64,000 nt of DNA from Macrostomum hystrix (Eukaryota; Animalia; Platyhelminthes), in contig CATNEN010000038.1 of the NCBI GenBank assembly GCA_950097015.1, forward strand, positions 10,540,001 to 10,604,000. The letters are read 5' to 3'. This document shows positions 51,122 to 63,740 of this stretch, one piece after another. Numbering within the stretch: the first letter of the stretch is position 1; the number at the start of each line of letters is the position of its first letter. Made by a program: the position numbers and the translations under genes. The notes beneath the pieces were generated by a model. That model was not told the DNA's origin. It did no database searches and was given only the letters and a program-made list of their open reading frames with translations.

Positions 51122-54100
51122 CTAAATTCCCGCCCCCTCTGCTGAGGCCGCCGATGCTCCGGGCGTCGCAGCCGCTGTCGGAGGCGGCGGAGGCAGGGGG
51201 CGCAAATCACGAATCTGCTTGACCAGGTATTGCTTCTCTTCACTAAACTGATTGTCGCACTGCCGATCGGTTTGAAAATTTTGCAAGAATTCCACTAGCC
51301 GATCTTGATTCTGTACTAGAATGTTGTGCACCGCCCTGGGCTTGTTGGGATTGGCTACGAACACCTGGTGTCGGGGATTTGGCCAGTATTCCAATTAGTC
51401 AACAGCTCTGTTAAACAAATTTGAAAATATTAAATCCTCACCTTGAAACAGTGAAAAGCTTCGAAAGCAATTTGTTTCTGACGACTCTTCAAAGCGTTCA
51501 TGATCAGCTTGAGGTTCTCGGCGTTTGTAATGTAGCGAGTCATCACGTTGTAGTTGTAGCGGTCCAGTAGCAACTCGCCAAGCAGCTGCAGCAAAATGAA
51601 TAGAAAAAGAATTACAGACTATGGATACACTGGTGCAGACAGCTACAACTGACGAGCCAGGCGTCTGGGCTCTAACTAGGGCCAACTGCGGCATGCCAGA
51701 CTGCTTGTAAGGTCTATGGCATCTAAGGCTGTATTTGTTATAATTCCGAAACTAGGATCTAAAAACTGGTTTATGACAGCCCACACTGAGGATCTAAAAC
51801 TGGTTCATGACAGCCCACACTGAGGATCTAAAACTGGTTCATGACAGCCCACACTGAGGATCTAAAACTGGTTTATGACAGCCCACACTGAGGATCTAAA
51901 AACTGGTTCATGACAGCCCACACTGAGGATCTAAAAACTGGTTTATGACAGCCCACACTGAGGATCTAAAAACTGGTTCATGACAGCCCACACTGAGGAT
52001 CTAAAAACTGGTTCATGACAGCCCACACTGAGGATCTAAAACTGGTTTATGACAGCCCACACTGAGGATCTAAAAACTGGTTCATGACAGCCCACACTGA
52101 GGATCTAAAAACTGGTTCATGACAGCCCACACTGAGGATCTAAAAACTGGTTTATGACAGCCCACACTGAGGATCTAAAAACTGGTTTATGACAGCCCAC
52201 ACTGAGGATCTAAAACTGGTTTATGACAGCCCACACTGAGGATCTAAAACTGGTTTATGACAGCCCACACTGAGGATCTAAAAACTGGTTTATGACAGCC
52301 CACACTAAGGATCTAAAAACTGGTTTATGACAGCCCACACTGAGGATCTAAAACTGGTTTATGACAGCTCACACTGAGGATCTAAAAACTGGTTTATGAC
52401 AGCCCACACTGAGGATCTAAAACTGGTTCATGACAGGCCACACTGAGGATCTAAAACTGGTTTATGACAGCCCACACTGAGGATCTAAAACTGGTTTATG
52501 ACAGCCCACACTGAGGATCTAAAAACTGGTTTATGACAGCCCACACTGAGGATCTAAAACTGGTTTATGACAGCCCACACTGAGGATCTAAAACTGGTTT
52601 ATGACAGCCCACACTGAGGATCTAAAACTGGTTCATCAAAGCCCACACCGAGGATCTAAAACTGGTTCATGACAGCCCACACTGAGGATCTAAAACTGGT
52701 TCATGACAGCCCACACTGAGGATCTAAAACTGGTTTATGACAGCCCACACTGAGGATCTAAAACTGGTTTATGACAGCCCACACTGAGGATCTAAAAACT
52801 GGTTTATGACAGCCCACACTGAGGATCTAAAACTGGTTCATGACAGCCCACACTGAGGATCTTAAACTGGTTTATGACAGCCCACACTGAGGATCTAAAA
52901 CTGGTTTATGACAGCCCACACTGAGGATCTAAAAACTGGTTTATGACAGCCCACACTGAGGATCTAAAACTGGTTTATGACAGCCCACACTGAGGATCTA
53001 AAACTGGTTCATGACAGCCCACACTGAGGATCTAAAAACTGGTTTATGACAGCCCACACTGAGGATCTAAAAACTGGTTCATGACAGCCCACACTGAGGA
53101 TCTAAAACTAGTTTATGACAGCCCATACTGAGGATCTAAAAACTGGTTTATGACAACCCACACTGAGGATCTAAAACTGGTTCATGACAGCCCACACTGA
53201 GGATCTAAAACTGGTTCATGACAGCCCACACTGAGGATCTAAAAACTGGTTTATGACAGCCCACACTGAGGATCTATAAACTGGTTCATGACAGCCCACA
53301 CTGAGGATCTAAAAACTGGTTTATGACAGCCCACACCGAGGATCTAAAAACTGGTTTATGACAGCCCACACTGAGGATCTAAAACTGGTTTATGACAGCC
53401 CACACTGAGGATCTAAAACTGGTTTATGACAGCCCACACTGAGGAACTAAAAACTGGTTCATGACATTCCATACTGAGGATCTAAAAACTGGTTTATGAC
53501 AGCCCACACTGAGGATCTAAAACTGGTTCATGACAGCCCACACTGAGGATCTAAAACTGGTTTATGACAGCCCACACTGAGGATCTAAAACTGGTTTATG
53601 ACAGCCCACACTGAGGATCTAAAACTGGTTTATGACAGCCCACACTGAGGATCTAAAACTGGTTCATGACAGCCCACACTGAGGATCTAAAAACTGGTTT
53701 ATGACAGCCCACACTGAGGATCTAAAACTGGTTCATGACAGCCCACACTGAGGATCTAAAACTGGTTTATGACAGCCCACACTGAGGATCTAAAACTGGT
53801 TTATGACAGCCCACACTGAGGATCTAAAACTGGTTCATGACAGCCCACACTGAGGATCTAAAAACTGGTTTATGACAGCCCACACTGAGGATCTAAAACT
53901 GGTTCATGACAGCCCACACTGAGGATCTAAAACTAGTTTATGACAGCCCACACTGAGGATCTAAAAACTGGTTTATGACAGCCCACACTGAGGATCTAAA
54001 ACTGGTTCATGACAGCCCACACTGAGGATCTAAAACTGGTTTATGACAGCCCACACTGAGGATCTAAAAACTGGTTTATGACAGCCCACACTGAGGATCT

Positions 54101-57100
54101 AAAACTGGTTCATGACAGCCCACACTGAGGATCTAAAAACTGGTTTATGACAGCCCACACTGAGGATCTAAAACTGGTTCATGACAGCCCACACTGAGGA
54201 TCTAAAACTGGTTTATGACAGCCCACACTGAGGATCTAAAAACTGGTTCATGACAGCCCACACTGAGGATCTAAAAACTGGTTTATGACAGCCCACACCG
54301 AGGATCTAAAAACTGGTTTATGACAGCCCACACTGAGGATCTAAAACTGGTTCATGACAGCCCACACTGAGGATCTAAAACTGGTTTATGACAGCCCACA
54401 CTGAGGATCTAAAACTGGTTTATGACAGCCCACACTGAGGATCTAAAACTGGTTTATGACAGCCCACACTGAGGATCTAAAAACTGGTTTATGACAGCCC
54501 ACACTGAGGATCTAAAACTGGTTTATGACAGCCCACACTGAGGATCTAAAACTGGTTCATCAAAGCCCACACCGAGGATCTAAAACTGGTTCATGACAGC
54601 CCACACTGAGGATCTAAAACTGGTTTATGACAGCCCACACTGAGGATCTAAAACTGGTTTATGACAGCCCACACTGAGGATCTAAAACTGGTTTATGACA
54701 GCCCACACTGAGGATCTAAAAACTGGTTTATGACAGCCCACACTGAGGATCTAAAACTGGTTTATGACAGCCCACACTGAGGATCTAAAACTGGTTCATG
54801 ACAGCCCACACTGAGGATCTAAAAACTGGTTTATGACAGCCCACACTGAGGATCTAAAAACTGGTTCATGACCGCCCACACAGAGGATCTAAAACTAGTT
54901 TATGACAGCCCATACTGAGGATCTAAAAACTGGTTTATGACAACCCACACTGAGGATCTAAAACTGGTTCATGACAGCCCACACTGAGGATCTAAAACTG
55001 GTTTATGACAGCCCACACTGAGGATCTAAAACTGGTTCATGACAGTCCACACTGAGGATCTAAAAACTGGTTTATGACAGCCCACACTGAGGATCTATAA
55101 ACTGGTTCATGACAGCCCACACTGAGGATCTAAAAACTGGTTTATGACAGCCCACACCGAGGATCTAAAAACTGGTTTATGACAGCCCACACTGAGGATC
55201 TAAAACTGGTTTATGACAGCCCACACTGAGGATCTAAAACTGGTTTATGACAGCCCACACTGAGGATCTAAAAACTGGTTCATGACATTCCATACTGAGG
55301 ATCTAAAAACTGGTTTATGACAGCCCACACTGAGGATCTAAAACTGGTTCATGACAGCCCACACTGAGGATCTAAAACTGGTTTATGACAGCCCACACTG
55401 AGGATCTAAAACTGGTTTATGACAGCCCACACTGAGGATCTAAAACTGGTTTATGACAGCCCACACTGAGGATCTAAAACTGGTTCATGACAGCCCACAC
55501 TGAGGATCTAAAAACTGGTTTATGACAGCCCACACTGAGGATCTAAAACTGGTTCATGACAGCCCACACTGAGGATCTAAAACTGGTTCATGACAGCCCA
55601 CACTGAGGATCTAAAACTGGTTCATGACAGCCCACACTGAGGATCTAAAAACTGGTTTATGACAGCCCACACTGAGGATCTAAAACTGGTTCATGACAGC
55701 CCACACTGAGGATCTAAAACTAGTTTATGACAGCCCACACTGAGGATCTAAAAACTGGTTTATGACAGCCCACACTGAGGATCTAAAACTGGTTCATGAC
55801 AGCCCACACTGAGGATCTAAAACTAGTTTATGACAGCCCACACTGAGGATCTAAAAACTGGTTTTTGACAGCCCACACTGAGGATCTAAAACTGGTTCAT
55901 GACAGCCCACACTGAGGATCTAAAAACTGGTTTATGACAGCCCACACTGAGGATCTAAAACTGGTTCATGACAGCCCACACCGAGGATCTAAAAACTGGT
56001 TTATGACAGCCCACACTGAGGATCTAAAACTGGTTTATGACAGCCCACACTGAGGATCTAAAACTGGTTCATCAAAGCCCACACCGAGGATCTAAAAACT
56101 GGTTCATGACAGCCCACACCGAGGATCTAAAAACTGGTTCATCACAGCCCACACTGAGGATCAATAAACTGGTTCATGACAGCCCACACTGAGTGTTTTT
56201 GCAATACTAAGATCTAAAAACATAATGTCCACTGCATTCTGAAATAAACATACGTCAGCTTCATAAGAAAAATCTAAAGATTGTCAGGCTGAAGACGATG
56301 CATATGAGAATATCAAAATGAGAAAACTGAAATGAAAAATACTGGTCATGTGGCCGGCCTAGTAAAAGCCCCAGTCCGTGCCAGAGTCGACAGTGTGGAC
56401 CGGGGCTTCCAGTTAGGCAGGCCTCACCCGGACAGACAGTCTGTCCGCAATGTCCAGTAACCAGACTGTGCTGTGCATTGAATCAGTTGTAAAACAGTCG
56501 GAGTGTATGTTTGCCAGTACAGTGTGGTTCATTCAAATAATTTCTACTTTCTCCGGATGTTGCAACGCTAAATTGAGCATTTTAAGTCAATTTATTTTTT
56601 ATTTTCTTTTTTAAACGTTCAATTTAAGTCCGATGATTCTTTTGCACAGCTATGTGGCCAGCTTGGCAAAAGCCCCAGTCCGAGACAGAGAATTTGGACC
56701 GGGGCTTCCAGTTAGGCAGGCCTCACTTTTCAATATAGGGCCTTAAAAATATATGTAAAGCACTTTTCACCTGTTCAGTTTAGAGCACTGGCTGACGACA
56801 GCGAACACATGGGGCCATTTTGATGCAGTAATTTGGTATAGTTTTATAGATTTGCAGGGGTTGCAGCCTTATGGTTTGAGTGTCAGAGTAGCGCTTAGTT
56901 ACCTTCAGCAAAGTAAAAGTAGCCCCAAGACTACGATTAATCACTGGCCGCCCATTTCATTTTTAGCTAGATTAATTAAAATAGTAGCCATGTGGCATGC
57001 TTGGTAAAAGCCCCCGTCCGAGTCTCATATTGTGTGGGCCAGGGCTTCCAGTTAGGCAGGCCTCACCCGGACAGACAAGTCTGTCCGCAGTGTCAAATAT

Positions 57101-60100
57101 AGGCCTTCATAACCAGACTGTGCTGCTCAAGAGTCAGTTGCAAAACAGTCTGAATTGAGTGTGCGATTGGCCAGCATAGTGTGCGTCATTCAATATGTTA
57201 TTTTACTGTTCCCAGATTTTGCAACACTTCAATTTAAATTAGAGTAAATATATTTACATTTTCTTTCGGAACGTCTACGATAAGTCCGATGATTCTGTTA
57301 TAACAGACATGTGGCCAGCTTGGTAAAAGCCCCAGTCCGAGACAGAGAATGTGGACCGGGGCTTCCAGTTAGGCAGGCCTCACTGTTCAATGTAGGCCCT
57401 TCAAACATAAGTGTGCAAAGCACTGTTCGCCTGTTCAGTATAGAATACTGGCTGACAGCGAACACTTTGGGCCATTTTAATTAACTGGTTTGCAGTAATT
57501 TGGGATAGTTAAAGGATTTGCAGGGGGTAGTAGCATAGTTGTCAGAGTGTTAGACACACGAATTAAAGGTCCGTGGAACGTCTACATTAAGTCCTATGAT
57601 TACACAGCAATGCGGCCTGACTGCAAAGGTACAAGCTAGGACCAAAGAACTGTTTTCGTCAACAAGTTTTTTACAACGCCGAGACATGGACCCTGACTGA
57701 GGCGCTGGAGCGTTAAGTCGATACAGCGCACGCTGGCCTGCTGCGCGCTGCCTTTAGAATCGGCTTTGATCAGCACGTCACCAACGCGGCACTTTATCAC
57801 CGAGCCGGCCTGGCCTGCACGAGCGACCTACACCTACTGCGCCGTCGGCTACTACAGCTGGCAGGCCACCTGATCCACGCCGAGGATTACTGTCCCCAGC
57901 CTGCGCAGGAGGTGCAGCTGCTAACGCTGCAGGCCCCTCTTCGGCGGGGGCAGGCGCGAACTCGGCAGTACGTCGACTGCCTGTTAACCAACGCCGGCGC
58001 CCCGGACACTGCCGGAGGCCTTGCCTACGTGCGCGCCCAGGCCTTGAAACATTCTTTCTGAGGCTTAATTCTAACTCTGGCGTATATTGCTGTTGTTGTT
58101 GCTGTGGCCTGCTTGGTAAAAGCCCCAGTCCGTGCTAGACAAGTGTGGATCGGGGCTTCCAGTTAGGCAGGCTTCACCCGGACAGACAGACAGCCTGTCC
58201 GCAATGTTCAATATTGGCCCTCACAACAAGACTGTTGCACAAACAAATAAGCAGCGAACAGCCCGATCTTAGTGAATGTTGGGCCATACCTTCTTTTTCA
58301 AACTGAGGTTTTTTCTTTTTTCAATGTTACGAGAGTAACTAATACTCATATGAAAATTGTTGTTTTATTTTACGTTAAGATACACCGCCATGTGGCCTGC
58401 TTGGTAAAAGCCCCAGTCCGAGTTTGTGTGGACCGGGGCTTCCAGTTAGGCAGGCCTCACTGTTCAATGTAGGCCCTTCAAACATAAGTGTGCAAAGCAC
58501 TGTTCGCCTGTTCAGTATAGAATACTGAACAGGCGAACATTTGGGGCCAAGAAATCTTTGGTTACTAATTATCCTGATTAATATTTGAACCGCCAGGCAT
58601 TAAATACACTTTAGTCCTTAGAGGACTGATTTAGTTAAAAGGCTTTAGAAAGTTATATATAACTGCTAAAAGTACAGTTTGTATATTTTTTATGAGCGAA
58701 AAGCGTAAGAAACTGCCATTTCGTGTGTATCTGCTCTCGCTGACTGTTAGCTTAACTTAGCAAGATCGAGTTAACAATTAGTTTTATATGAGCCAAACCA
58801 TTTAATAGTGCAACATTAGCGACAAACTTTAGATAGGTCCCGGTTTCAGAATAAATTCCGACAATGACATCGCACGAAAAAATGCGAACACTTAGAAGTC
58901 ATATCTAAATTTAATTTTGACTGTCGATATCGAGATGGTCTTTCCCCGAACTTGCGACTCTATCAAGGTCATCTAATGGACTGTGACTCTATCAAGGTCA
59001 TGTAATGGACTGTGACTCTATCAAAGTCATCTAATGGACTGTGACTCTATCAAGGTCATCTAATGGACTGTGACTCTATCAAGGTCATCTAATGGACTGT
59101 GACTCTATCAAGGTCATCTAATGGACTGTGACTCTATCAAGGTCATCTAATGGACTGTGACTCTATCAAAGTCATCTAATGGTCATCTAATGGACTGTGA
59201 CTCTATCAAGGTCATCTAATGGACTGTGACTCTATCAAGGTCATCTAATGGACTGTGACTCTATCAAAGTCATCTAATGGACTGTGACTCTATCAAAGTC
59301 ATCTAATGGACTGTGACTCTAACAAAGTCATCTAATGGACTGTGACTCTATCAAGGTCATCTAATGGACTGTGACTCTATCAAAGTCATCTAATGGACTG
59401 TGACTCTATCAAGGTCATCTAATGGACTGTGACTCTATCAAGGTCATCTAATGGACTGTGACTCTATCAAAGTCATCTAATGGACTGTGACTCTATCAAG
59501 GTCATCTAATGGACTGTGACTCTATCAAAGTCATCTAATGGACTGTGACTCTATCAAGGTCATCTAATGGACTGTGACTCTATCAAGGTCATCTAATGGA
59601 CTGTGACTCTATCAAAGTCATCTAATGGACTGTGACTCTATCAAGGTCATCTAATGGACTGTGACTCTATCAAGGTCATCTAATGGACTGTGACTCTATC
59701 AAAGTCATCTAATGGACTGTGACTCTATCAAGGTCATCTAATGGACTGTGACTCTATCAAAGTCATCTAATGGACTGTGACTCTATCAAAGTCATCTAAT
59801 GGACTGTGACTCTAACAAAGTCATCTAATGGACTGTGACTCTATCAAGGTCATCTAATGGACTGTGACTCTATCAAAGTCATCTAATGGACTGTGACTCT
59901 ATCAAAGTCATCTAATGGACTGTGACTCTATCAAGGTCATCTAATGGTTTGTGAATTTACCAAGGTCATATTCTAAAAGAGTGTAGCATAGTGTCATGCA
60001 ATTGACTTAGGCACTGTCATTCAGGGGTTTATTTAGTGGACTGTGGACACTATTTAGATCGTTCAGTGGAATTTCAACACTGAACCTAGACTATTGAGTA

Positions 60101-60894
60101 AATCTCATATTTTAATAAATTAAAAGCTCAAATTTAAAACGACTCACCTTTAAAGCCTGCCGCTTTGTGACATAGTTTTCGGACTCGATCAAGACCCTAT
60201 AATTGTCGAAGAACTGATTGAAATTGGCCTCGAGAAATTTCGCCACCATAGCTTTGTGCCTAGTCAGCAGGTCCTTCAATGTGGTGAAAGCATCAGAGCT
60301 AACATCGAAGGCGGTGCCGTGAACGTGCGCGAATAAATCGTAGAAGCGCGGATCCCATAAGAACTTCTCGGCTATCTTCTCGTGCCGACAGGCCTCGCGA
60401 AGCATACCGCCGAAGCTGATGGCGTGCTCCGGCCGATGATAACCTTCAACCAGGCGGTAAAGCACGTTTATGTTGTCAATGACGTATTCAATGGCCGGAT
60501 GCCTATTAGCCACCTTTTTAGACATCAGGTGAGTGAACAGGTGCTCAACAAATTTCGAGCACTCAAAGTCAATCTTGTCGATGTTATCCAACAGTAGTGG
60601 AATTGTGTTGCGACACTCGGCGCTGAAAATCTCCTGCGAGATATCTGTCAGGGCGTCGCTAATTCTCGCCTTCTCTGAATTGGCCTCGGCCTCCTTAGAG
60701 CTGGGATCCACTCGCTCGGTTAACAGAGTCTTGATAGATGTCAGCGCTTTGGCTACATCCTCCTGGGCCTTCTTAAGGTCGCGCGCGCCCGTTGCGCCGC
60801 CGCCGCCGTCAGCAGCCAGCACCCTCAGGGCATTGTGTAACTGGACAACCAAATCTTTTGGCGTCTTCTGCCGGCCAAGTTTGAACATATTCAT
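51122..60894 (-). CDS. CAB39: MO25 / calcium-binding protein 39, ~377 aa
   Basis: Exons 60894-60148 (…[11 protein letters not shown]…[19 protein letters not shown]…[12 protein letters not shown]), 51585-51442 ([19 protein letters not shown]…ENLKLIMN…[10 protein letters not shown]) and 51364-51122 (VFVANPNKP…[15 protein letters not shown]). All junctions are phase-0 GT-AG. Confidence 0.95.
51754..56193. repeat. 32/33-bp satellite (~135 copies) in the MO25 intron
   Basis: Unit gaggatctaaaa(a)ctggtt(t/c)atgacagcccacact. Confidence 0.97.
56346..56517 (-). ncRNA. H/ACA snoRNA-like RNA, copy 1 (type A; hinge box and base of 5' hairpin deleted, possibly degenerate)
   Basis: Conserved 3' hairpin ending GGCC-ACA (56351-56349) plus hinge hairpin CGGACAGA.../TCTGTCCG. 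Confidence 0.55.
56650..56818 (-). ncRNA. H/ACA snoRNA-like RNA, copy 2 (type B)
   Basis: 5' GGCCC..GGCC hairpin, ATATTGA hinge, conserved 3' hairpin, ACA at 56655-56653. Confidence 0.65.
56988..57174 (-). ncRNA. H/ACA snoRNA-like RNA, copy 3 (type A)
   Basis: 5' hairpin with CAGACTGT/ACAGTCTG upper stem, ATATTTGA hinge, extra hinge hairpin, 3' hairpin, ACA at 56993-56991. Confidence 0.65.
57307..57475 (-). ncRNA. H/ACA snoRNA-like RNA, copy 4 (type B)
   Basis: As copy 2; ACATTGA hinge, ACA at 57312-57310. Confidence 0.7.
57620..58102 (+). mobile_element. 5'-truncated RTE-type LINE fragment (pseudogenised ORF C-terminus)
   Basis: 57672-58061 translates as [29 protein letters not shown]...VTNAALY...[11 protein letters not shown]...P...[15 protein letters not shown], the post-RT C-terminal motif set of RTE-like LINEs. 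A short 3' UTR and a (TTG)n tail follow. Confidence 0.8.
58100..58287 (-). ncRNA. H/ACA snoRNA-like RNA, copy 5 (type A)
   Basis: 5' hairpin TGGCCC...GGGCTGTT/AACAGTCT...GGGCCA, ATATTGA hinge, extra hinge hairpin, 3' hairpin, ACA at 58105-58103. Confidence 0.7.
58388..58550 (-). ncRNA. H/ACA snoRNA-like RNA, copy 6 (type B)
   Basis: 5' hairpin with an 18-bp perfect stem, ACATTGA hinge, 3' hairpin GGCCTGC-CTAACTGG-AAGCCCCGGTCC..GGACTGGGGCTT-TTACCAA-GCAGGCC, ACA at 58393-58391. Confidence 0.7.
58955..59968. repeat. 29-bp minisatellite (gactctatcaa(g/a)gtcatctaatggactgt, ~35 copies)
   Basis: Direct reading. Confidence 0.96.
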
Positions 60895-62370: not shown

Positions 62371-63740
62371 CTTCGGGTGTCCGGAAAGTCATGAGAATGT
62401 GTTATTCTAACTACTTAGACACAAGCTATTGACAAGATACTGTACCATTCTAACACTTGACTTAATATATGTCTATGGCTGAAAGAGCTAGATTCTAGCT
62501 TCAAATTTGGGGGTAAGGCTGATGGTTATAACTTAGAAGTCTAGGCCACTGCAACGCAGAGGCAAAGCAAGCATCTATCGTTACTTTTTTCTTCATTGAT
62601 CCTTGCTGCTGCTTTGAGATGGACGAGTTTCAAGCTTATGCTTATACCAGGTATAAGCTTGGTATATGTGCTCCTGATTGCCATGGAGAACTGCTGAAAG
62701 TGCATGGAGATGTGGCGCCAGGTCTGTCGTCAGTGTACCGATGGTACACAAGGTTCCGTGACGAGTCGTACCCACTGGCCCAAGCTGCCCGTACTGGCCG
62801 GCCAAGATTGACGAGAACACCAGAGCTGATCGAGACCTGCAGAAATCTCGTGAAAGAAGACCCAAAAGTGACTGATAGAGATCTTGCTGACTTCATGGAG
62901 GTTGGGAAATCAACAGTGCATGAAATATTGACTGAAGACCTGCAACTTCGCAATGTGTCTGCCGTGTGTCCCGCATGTTCTCTCCGAGGAGAACAAGGTT
63001 GCTCGCGTCAATTGTGCCAAGCAAATACGTCGGATTTTTCATACCGAGGGCATGACCAGCTTCTGCAACAAGTACGTGGTGGAGGACGAGACGTGGGTGT
63101 ACCTTAAAAACACTGGTACACGGCAGAACAACCGGTGCTGGCTGGGTCAAGGCGACCATCGACCTCAAGTTGTGAGACACTCAGTCGGGGACCCAAAGAC
63201 AATGCTGGTAGTCGCTTTCACCCCAAGCAAGAGATTCTCTATCATGTCAATGGCGCCAAAGCAGACTGTTGATGCCAATCGCATTGTTGAATTCGTTCGA
63301 CACACAGGTGACCTATGGCGGAGCCTCAGATCACAGCCAATTCATTTGTCCGAAGTCTTGTGGCAGTGGGACAACGCACAACCTCATGTGGCCCAGCCTG
63401 TGCAGCAGTACATGGAGACTCGTGGAGTTCAACTGCTTTTTCAGAGTCCCTACAGCCCTGATTTCAATTTATGCGACCGTTTTTTCTTCAATTGGCTGAA
63501 ATCGGACTTCTCGAAGCGGGAGTTCAGCAGCCACGATGAGGTCCGCGAGGCCGCGTTGCAGTGGGCGAGGGGTCTGGATGCAAACTGCTTGAAACGCGAG
63601 GTTCTACGGCTCGTGGAGCACTGCCAATCTGTGATTGACTTCAGGGGAAATTACATTACTGATTAGTAAAGTTTCACTGTTCTGCTCGTTTTTATAATTA
63701 ACCTTTTGTAGTTTTCTCATGACTTTCCGGACACCCGGAA
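62371..63740 (+). mobile_element. Full-length (1,370 bp) DD34D mariner transposon with frameshifted transposase
   Basis: 27-bp TIRs (cttcgggtgtccggaaagtcatgagaa / ttctcatgactttccggacacccggaa) flanked by TA. HTH ORF from 62619 (VYRWYTRF...RTGRP) and catalytic ORF to 63666 with EDETW, WDNAQPH and YSPDFNLCD; 34 residues separate the 2nd and 3rd D. Frameshift at ~62967. Confidence 0.93.

Follow-up and report, generated by a model that had tools for sequence, protein, structure and literature searches.

A six-copy intronic array of putative box H/ACA-type RNA genes in MO25 of Macrostomum hystrix

Why would a single intron carry the same hairpin six times, with its stems and internal pocket nearly frozen amid diverged spacers? 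The question is raised by MO25/CAB39 of the flatworm Macrostomum hystrix, within a 64,000-nt window of genomic DNA (assembly GCA_950097015.1, contig CATNEN010000038.1, positions 10,540,001–10,604,000 of the forward strand; unless stated otherwise, coordinates are positions in this window). On the minus strand of 56346–58548, six same-strand copies of a 161–186-nt unit lie sense to MO25 and are flanked by two satellites. From their sequence and predicted folds we lean, with some reserve, towards reading the six units as genes of a new, possibly orphan, lineage-specific family of box H/ACA-type small nucleolar RNAs (snoRNAs) that was tandemly amplified in the MO25 intron and includes two decaying copies.

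The array and its host intron

A first-pass annotation of this DNA had described a six-copy minus-strand array between two satellites in the MO25 intron, and every one of the six was recovered. At up to one mismatch, the window holds six occurrences of the core 15-mer CTAACTGGAAGCCCC, always on the minus strand (chance expectation 0.09), and a repeat finder aligns all six copies in register. Read on the minus strand, the unit runs through GGCCUGC, CUAACUGG, AAGCCCCGGUCC, a loop of 10–19 nt, GGACUGGGGCUU, UUACCAA, GCAGGCC and ACA. These segments form a 3′ hairpin whose geometry recurs in 6/6 copies: a lower stem of 7 bp, an 8/7-nt pocket and an upper stem of 12 bp, with 93% of pair cells paired. 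The ACA follows the lower-stem strand GCNGGCC immediately in every copy. The conserved pocket hairpin measures 66–75 nt, and the similarity common to all six copies starts about 95–115 nt upstream of it, at a shared TGGCC.

The copies alternate between type A (copies 1, 3 and 5) and type B (copies 2, 4 and 6), the latter with a 19–23-nt mini-hairpin, CGGACAG...CUGUCCG, inserted in the hinge; the array can therefore be described as about three A–B dimers. Copy 1 (58388–58548, 161 nt) consists of a GGCCC-closed 5′ domain, the hinge, the pocket hairpin (58456–58391) and the ACA (58393–58391) plus 3 nt; its segment of hairpin, ACA and 3 nt thus spans 58456–58388, and its hairpin folds at −41.1 kcal/mol. 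Copy 2 (58100–58285, 186 nt; hairpin segment 58173–58100) carries the mini-hairpin in its hinge (CGGACAG..CTGTCCG in the DNA) and one A–C mismatch in the upper stem. Copy 3 (57307–57473, 167 nt; hairpin segment 57379–57307) shares 101 identical nucleotides with copy 1 and has a U–U mismatch in the lower stem. Three pairs are unpaired in copy 4 (56988–57172, 185 nt; hairpin segment 57062–56988), two in the upper stem and one in the lower, and a further C–G pair has become U–G; its hairpin is the weakest of the six (−25.6 kcal/mol), and the copy is possibly decaying. In copy 5 (56650–56816, 167 nt; hairpin segment 56722–56650) the 3′ pocket strand reads UUGCCAA, with an A to G change. Copy 6 (56346–56515, 170 nt; hairpin segment 56423–56346) lacks part of the hinge and, in the stem that closes its 5′ domain, the 3′ half, and two changes in its 3′ pocket strand close the pocket; this copy is probably degenerate.

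The start-to-start spacing of the units is about 283–340 nt, except between copies 2 and 3, where it rises to 794 nt because a dispersed-repeat fragment of about 400 nt sits in the spacer (57640–58045, plus strand). This fragment lies outside the RNA units and antisense to MO25, resembles the 3′ end of a long interspersed nuclear element (LINE), is GC-rich (60%) and has at least 40 genomic copies at 76–84% identity. An open frame within it resembles the C-terminal end of LINE ORF2.

Coding exon 1 of MO25 (60148–60894, minus strand) opens with an ATG at 60894, and its product ends in ...RQALK directly before GTGAGT. It is contained in a 260-amino-acid open reading frame (ORF) at 60112–60894 on the same strand, and the exon 1 protein is 96% identical to a Mo25 protein of Macrostomum lignano (gene BOX15_Mlig032685g1), which carries the Pfam domain PF08569. 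The next coding exon begins at 51585 and is preceded by a polypyrimidine tract and CAG. The intron between them (51586–60147, minus strand, 8,562 nt) has its GT at 60147–60146 and its AG at 51587–51586. From these boundaries it follows that all six units lie sense within one intron. A satellite with a 29-nt period (58956–59969) bounds the array on the exon 1 side, and one with a 34-nt period (54000–56193) bounds it on the exon 2 side, the latter continuing below 54000, the edge of our query.

We searched the 220-Mb assembly for further copies. Searching with one hairpin (blastn) returned exactly six, at one locus and on one strand; neither a covariance model built from the six copies (R1) nor a pattern made of both pocket strands and the ACA found additional members. 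These searches, together with the intron boundaries, bear out the description of a single-locus tandem family in sense orientation. With six copies only, the unit is neither a short interspersed nuclear element (SINE) nor a miniature inverted-repeat transposable element (MITE), and the dispersed copies that the first-pass annotation had named as the sign of such an origin are excluded. A metagenome scan with a gapped pocket pattern gave 0 matches, and a literature search on Macrostomum snoRNAs and microRNAs (miRNAs) found nothing relevant to the MO25-intron element.

Selection and gene conversion at the 3′ hairpin

The contrast between hairpin and surroundings is steep. For the 100 nt flanking each side of the units, pairwise global identity is 52–65% for most pairs, compared with 58.7% for shuffled sequences aligned likewise, so the spacers are saturated; the youngest pairs, 3/5 and 4/6, reach just 64–71%. 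Between types A and B, the 5′ domains likewise compare at background (54–59%) and are unalignable. The 3′ hairpins, in contrast, are 78–96% identical pairwise with the variable loop included. Read 5′ to 3′, mean pairwise identity is 100% in the GUGA preceding the hairpin, 95% in the 5′ strand of the lower stem, 100% in the 5′ strand of the pocket, 92% and 97% in the two strands of the upper stem and 53% in the loop, followed by 86% in the 3′ strand of the pocket, 85% in the 3′ strand of the lower stem, 100% in the ACA and 44% in the six bases 3′ of it. In both subtypes the similarity ends 1–3 nt past the ACA. These values agree with the earlier remark that stems, pocket and ACA were kept while loops and spacers diverged.

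Copies 1 and 3 are 100% identical over a 101-nt tract (58427–58527 and 57350–57450) that has an edge at the hairpin loop. Since the flanks of these copies are at background, gene conversion operates here and the tract is recent. The units could be relics, former snoRNAs or another hairpin-bearing tandem repeat without function and no longer selected at the RNA level; conversion, together with quasi-palindrome correction of the DNA in a repeat-prone intron, would then account for the likeness of the arms. The intron is rich in tandem repeats, and the copy 1/3 tract amid saturated flanks shows conversion at work. Moreover, the 5′ domain of copy 1 holds a perfect 18-bp palindrome (58500–58540) that is imperfect in copies 3 (57424–57465) and 5 (56770–56810); this looks like quasi-palindrome (template-switch) correction at the DNA level, and the changes that close the internal loop of copy 6 look like products of the same process. 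Nearly all changes in the stems break pairs, none being compensated, and copies 4 and 6 are visibly damaged.

Three features speak against such a relic. Conversion tracts of about 100 nt would homogenize the 10–19-nt loops as well, yet the loops are 53% identical between identical arms, which argues for selection and not conversion alone. Palindrome correction would erase the pocket, whereas its 8-nt 5′ strand is invariant in 6/6 copies and the pocket is open in 5/6. Finally, conservation stops sharply past the ACA. We therefore consider the relic explanation unlikely, and we infer that purifying selection acts on an RNA that would end about 3 nt past the ACA and be most constrained in its pocket hairpin.

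Fit to box H/ACA RNAs and candidate targets

Eukaryotic box H/ACA snoRNAs carry an H box (ANANNA) in the hinge that follows a 5′ hairpin, in which a guide pocket is optional, place the target uridine and the base of the upper stem 14–16 nt from the ACA, and in their mature form are stable RNAs of 120–200 nt that end 3 nt past the ACA. Several properties of the MO25 units are consistent with this class. When the upper stem is drawn with 12 bp, as in the first-pass annotation, the ACA stands 14 nt from it; the unit length of 161–186 nt is typical of H/ACA RNAs; and a sense orientation within an intron of a gene transcribed by RNA polymerase II (Pol II) is usual for animal H/ACA snoRNAs. As for the second, 5′ hairpin proposed earlier, a domain closed by GGCC(C) is predicted to fold in 5/6 copies, copy 6 being without the closing stem.

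The sequence shows the anatomy, the single locus, the conservation pattern and the orientation in the host; expression, RNA ends, protein binding and target are what we infer in outlining how such RNAs would be made and act. The units would be transcribed within the MO25 pre-mRNA, and Dyskerin/Cbf5–Nop10–Nhp2–Gar1 would assemble on each of them, with the ACA bound beside the lower stem. In vertebrates the pattern is one snoRNA per intron; several units in one intron imply that the RNAs need endonucleolytic release. Endonucleolytic cuts followed by exonucleolytic trimming would remove the AT-rich spacers and leave RNAs of about 160–190 nt that end 3 nt past the ACA. The invariant 3′ pocket, with CUAACUGG as its 5′ strand and UUACCAA as its 3′ strand, would pair with the sequences that flank a target uridine on either side. 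The 5′ domain would act as a non-guide structural hairpin followed by a degenerate H box, in which UUG comes after ACA or AUA, and copies 4 and 6 would be decaying members. If expressed, the units would represent an undescribed, lineage-restricted H/ACA snoRNA family in a flatworm genus used as a regeneration model.

To find candidate targets, we scanned the species' own 18S and internal transcribed spacer (ITS)-5.8S-28S ribosomal DNA for sites at which, read 5′ to 3′, a complement to the 3′ pocket strand precedes U-N and a complement to the 5′ pocket strand follows it. The best contiguous pairing is found in 18S at about U589 (GGUAA-UU-CCAG, 5 + 4 Watson–Crick pairs), in the GGUAAUUCCAG 530-loop region. 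This match is not significant, since about 30% of shuffled guides reach nine pairs or more. When one mismatch per arm is allowed, the best site is U3348 of the large-subunit (LSU) rRNA, UGGUAA-UC-CUGCUUAG, 14 nt 5′ of the sarcin–ricin loop adenine, with 6 + 7 = 13 pairs, two G–U and one mismatch included. The match has a P value of 0.02–0.03 against shuffled guides and 0.08 against random guides, compared with 0.87 for the plus-strand pocket used as a control. The substitutions within the UUACC segment (A to G in copy 5, C to U in copy 6) retain pairing with GGUAA through G–U pairs. LSU U3348 would accordingly rank first and 18S about U589 second among candidate targets, and the case for U3348 is suggestive only. 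If expressed, the family may place a new pseudouridine beside the sarcin–ricin loop or in the 530-loop region of 18S, each of which is a functional core of the ribosome. For a comparison with human sites, Gm4618 in H95 served to anchor the numbering (PMC12288042). By our own count, the nearest known human pseudouridines presumably lie 12–15 nt further 5′ of the LSU candidate and do not coincide with it. No human small nuclear RNA (snRNA) is known to us to contain GGUAAU; no search of snRNA targets was made. A wider lead was rejected: the full pocket complement at up to two mismatches gave 93 matches in the genome against 59 for a control pattern, none of them perfect, and the recurring TTGGTGATGCCAGATAG match lies in an apparent dispersed coding repeat and not in an RNA gene.

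A number of observations weigh against assigning the units to box H/ACA RNAs. The minimum-energy fold adds U–A, G–U and G–U pairs (UGG with UUA), which reduces the internal loop to 5×4 and the ACA distance to 11 nt; the 14-nt spacing of the first-pass annotation thus stands with the 12-bp upper stem and is lost in this fold. The same fold pairs GUG with CAU and partly buries the ACA. Both sets of extra pairs are predicted to be weak, and a bound substrate could displace them. Reading every hexamer that starts with A, we found an ANANNA H box in 0/6 hinges; the sole H-like feature begins one base past the GGCC-closed 5′ stem and consists of ACA or AUA with UUG or UUU behind it. Consensus folds of the 5′ domain show no pocket 14–16 nt from this H-like motif. 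Of the proposed hairpin-hinge-hairpin-ACA architecture, the 3′ hairpin geometry and the ACA are therefore retained, but not the H box or a 5′ pocket. Covariation offers no help: 0 pairs are changed on both sides, a comparison of little power among six paralogues under concerted evolution, while one pair is changed from C–G to U–G and 8 pair cells are unpaired, 3 of them at one lower-stem position. The G–U pairs that had been taken to fix the strand turn out to be a weak guide, with one G–U per upper stem and folding energies that favour the plus strand in 2/6 copies. The suggested Rfam check on the minus strand returned no match to an H/ACA family at E values up to 10, a permissive search with one dimer included. 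The target statistics, too, are modest, and to our knowledge neither LSU U3348 nor 18S about U589 is a pseudouridine in yeast or human.

A more specific form of the H/ACA reading turns some of these departures into its premise. The units may encode an animal H/ACA-type ribonucleoprotein RNA with a single guide hairpin, in which a fast-evolving, non-guide 5′ domain is followed by an ANA motif in place of a canonical H box, and which would direct an undescribed pseudouridine at LSU U3348. Single-hairpin H/ACA-like RNAs of about 70 nt occur in trypanosomatids (where the box is AGA), Euglena and archaea, and, like them, the MO25 units would hold all recognizable function in one guide hairpin and an ANA box. 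Unlike them, the units share a 5′ boundary and keep a conserved domain on the 5′ side, which suggests a two-domain RNA; nor do we know of single-hairpin H/ACA-like RNAs in animals. We regard this form as quite unlikely.

Comparable arrays, other structured RNAs and neighbouring sequence

Tandem H/ACA units within one intron have been described before. The passage of PMC5932544 that cites Huang et al. (2004, J Mol Biol 341:669) describes intronic clusters in Drosophila, with several H/ACA snoRNA isoforms in one intron, and intronic H/ACA gene clusters have also been described in rice (PMC2780460). A second array occurs in the same genome (G000:C38:16237000-16242500), in which nine H/ACA-like units of about 160 nt follow one another at a spacing of about 300 nt, with a canonical AGAUUA H box and an ACA. 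Seven full-length copies of that array are 89–96% identical to a reference copy and the ninth, partial copy is 83% identical; one unit weakly matches the nematode H/ACA family ceN88 (Rfam, E 0.05). The first-pass annotation's view that several units per intron are unusual was thus overstated. The gene organization is not new, and the nine-unit array indicates that a multi-copy intronic layout is a habit of this genome and not a peculiarity of MO25. The MO25 units would add to a picture in which Macrostomum amplifies snoRNA genes as tandem arrays in long introns.

The likenesses and differences are informative. The MO25 array resembles the Drosophila clusters in having tandem H/ACA-type units sense in one intron of a Pol II gene, with a common guide pocket and diverged spacers. 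It differs from them in showing no Rfam or sequence homology to the Drosophila families and no canonical H box. With the nine-unit array it shares the spacing of about 300 nt, units of about 160 nt that end in ACA, and many copies in one stretch. That array is conserved over the whole unit and has a canonical H box, whereas the MO25 array is strongly conserved only in the 3′ hairpin, the 5′ domains of its two subtypes being unalignable. What is particular to the MO25 array is therefore the lack of a family match, the lack of a canonical H box and the very uneven constraint, under which the 3′ hairpin is frozen while the 5′ domain is free to change.

These comparisons bear on whether the units might be structured intronic RNAs of another kind, such as a protein-binding hairpin or a cis element that affects how MO25 is spliced or how stable its intron is, with no role in pseudouridylation. 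That unpaired nucleotides and the GUGA flank are under strong sequence constraint could be read in this way, as could the missing canonical H box and the lack of a significant family match or a validated target. However, a six-fold element of that sort is without precedent, and the position of the ACA and its 14-nt spacing would then be coincidental (the odds of an ACA at a fixed place are roughly 1 in 64). In addition, the layout agrees with the nine-unit snoRNA array of the same genome. We judge a structured RNA of this kind decidedly improbable.

An array of miRNA precursors, in which each hairpin would be a pri-miRNA for Drosha and Dicer and the conserved arms would be the mature and star strands, fares worse still. 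Conserved arms beside variable loops and flanks would fit, the hairpin length of 66–75 nt would suit a precursor, and the GUGA and ACAU flanks add to the basal stem, which then measures about 11 bp below the internal loop. There is also a weak, non-significant likeness in shape to MIR2084, a plant model (E 0.36; 18.6 bits, where the gathering score is 100). Animal miRNA precursors have a stem of about 33–35 bp that no large internal loop interrupts, 16 or more paired positions within the 22-nt duplex, and Microprocessor motifs. In the MO25 hairpins, a 5×4 (or 8×7) internal loop falls exactly at the expected Drosha cut, and the putative 5p strand is paired at about 15 of 22 positions. Direct reading of the six copies found none of the three motifs conserved (UG at −14 in the basal stem, UGU at the apex, CNNC downstream), and Rfam gave no match to an animal miRNA family. 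Such precursors would also fail to explain why a 5′ boundary is conserved about 100 nt upstream and why conservation ends 3 nt past the ACA, and we consider them very improbable. A hammerhead or other ribozyme and a C/D snoRNA were rejected for want of Rfam support and of a C box.

The remaining Rfam matches were at chance level. They comprise the MIR2084 likeness, a wrong-strand match to a Tetrahymena H/ACA family, and a SNORD72-like match outside the units, between the 29-nt satellite and copy 1 (58749–58828, minus strand). This last match is weak (22.9 bits against a gathering score of 43; E 4.2), has degenerate C and D boxes and is probably due to chance.

Two further features of the surroundings were recorded. 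A 27-nt spacer motif, AAUCAUCGGACUUAUCGUAGACGUUCC on the minus strand, occurs three times (56612–56638, 57268–57294 and 57575–57601), 13–40 nt downstream of units or adjoining the LINE fragment, and a small stem-loop can be drawn for it; it might serve as a signal for processing, or simply be left over from the ancestral spacer. Upstream of MO25, two adjoining ORFs of 162 and 237 amino acids on the plus strand (62619–63666) resemble a mariner/Tc1-type transposase.

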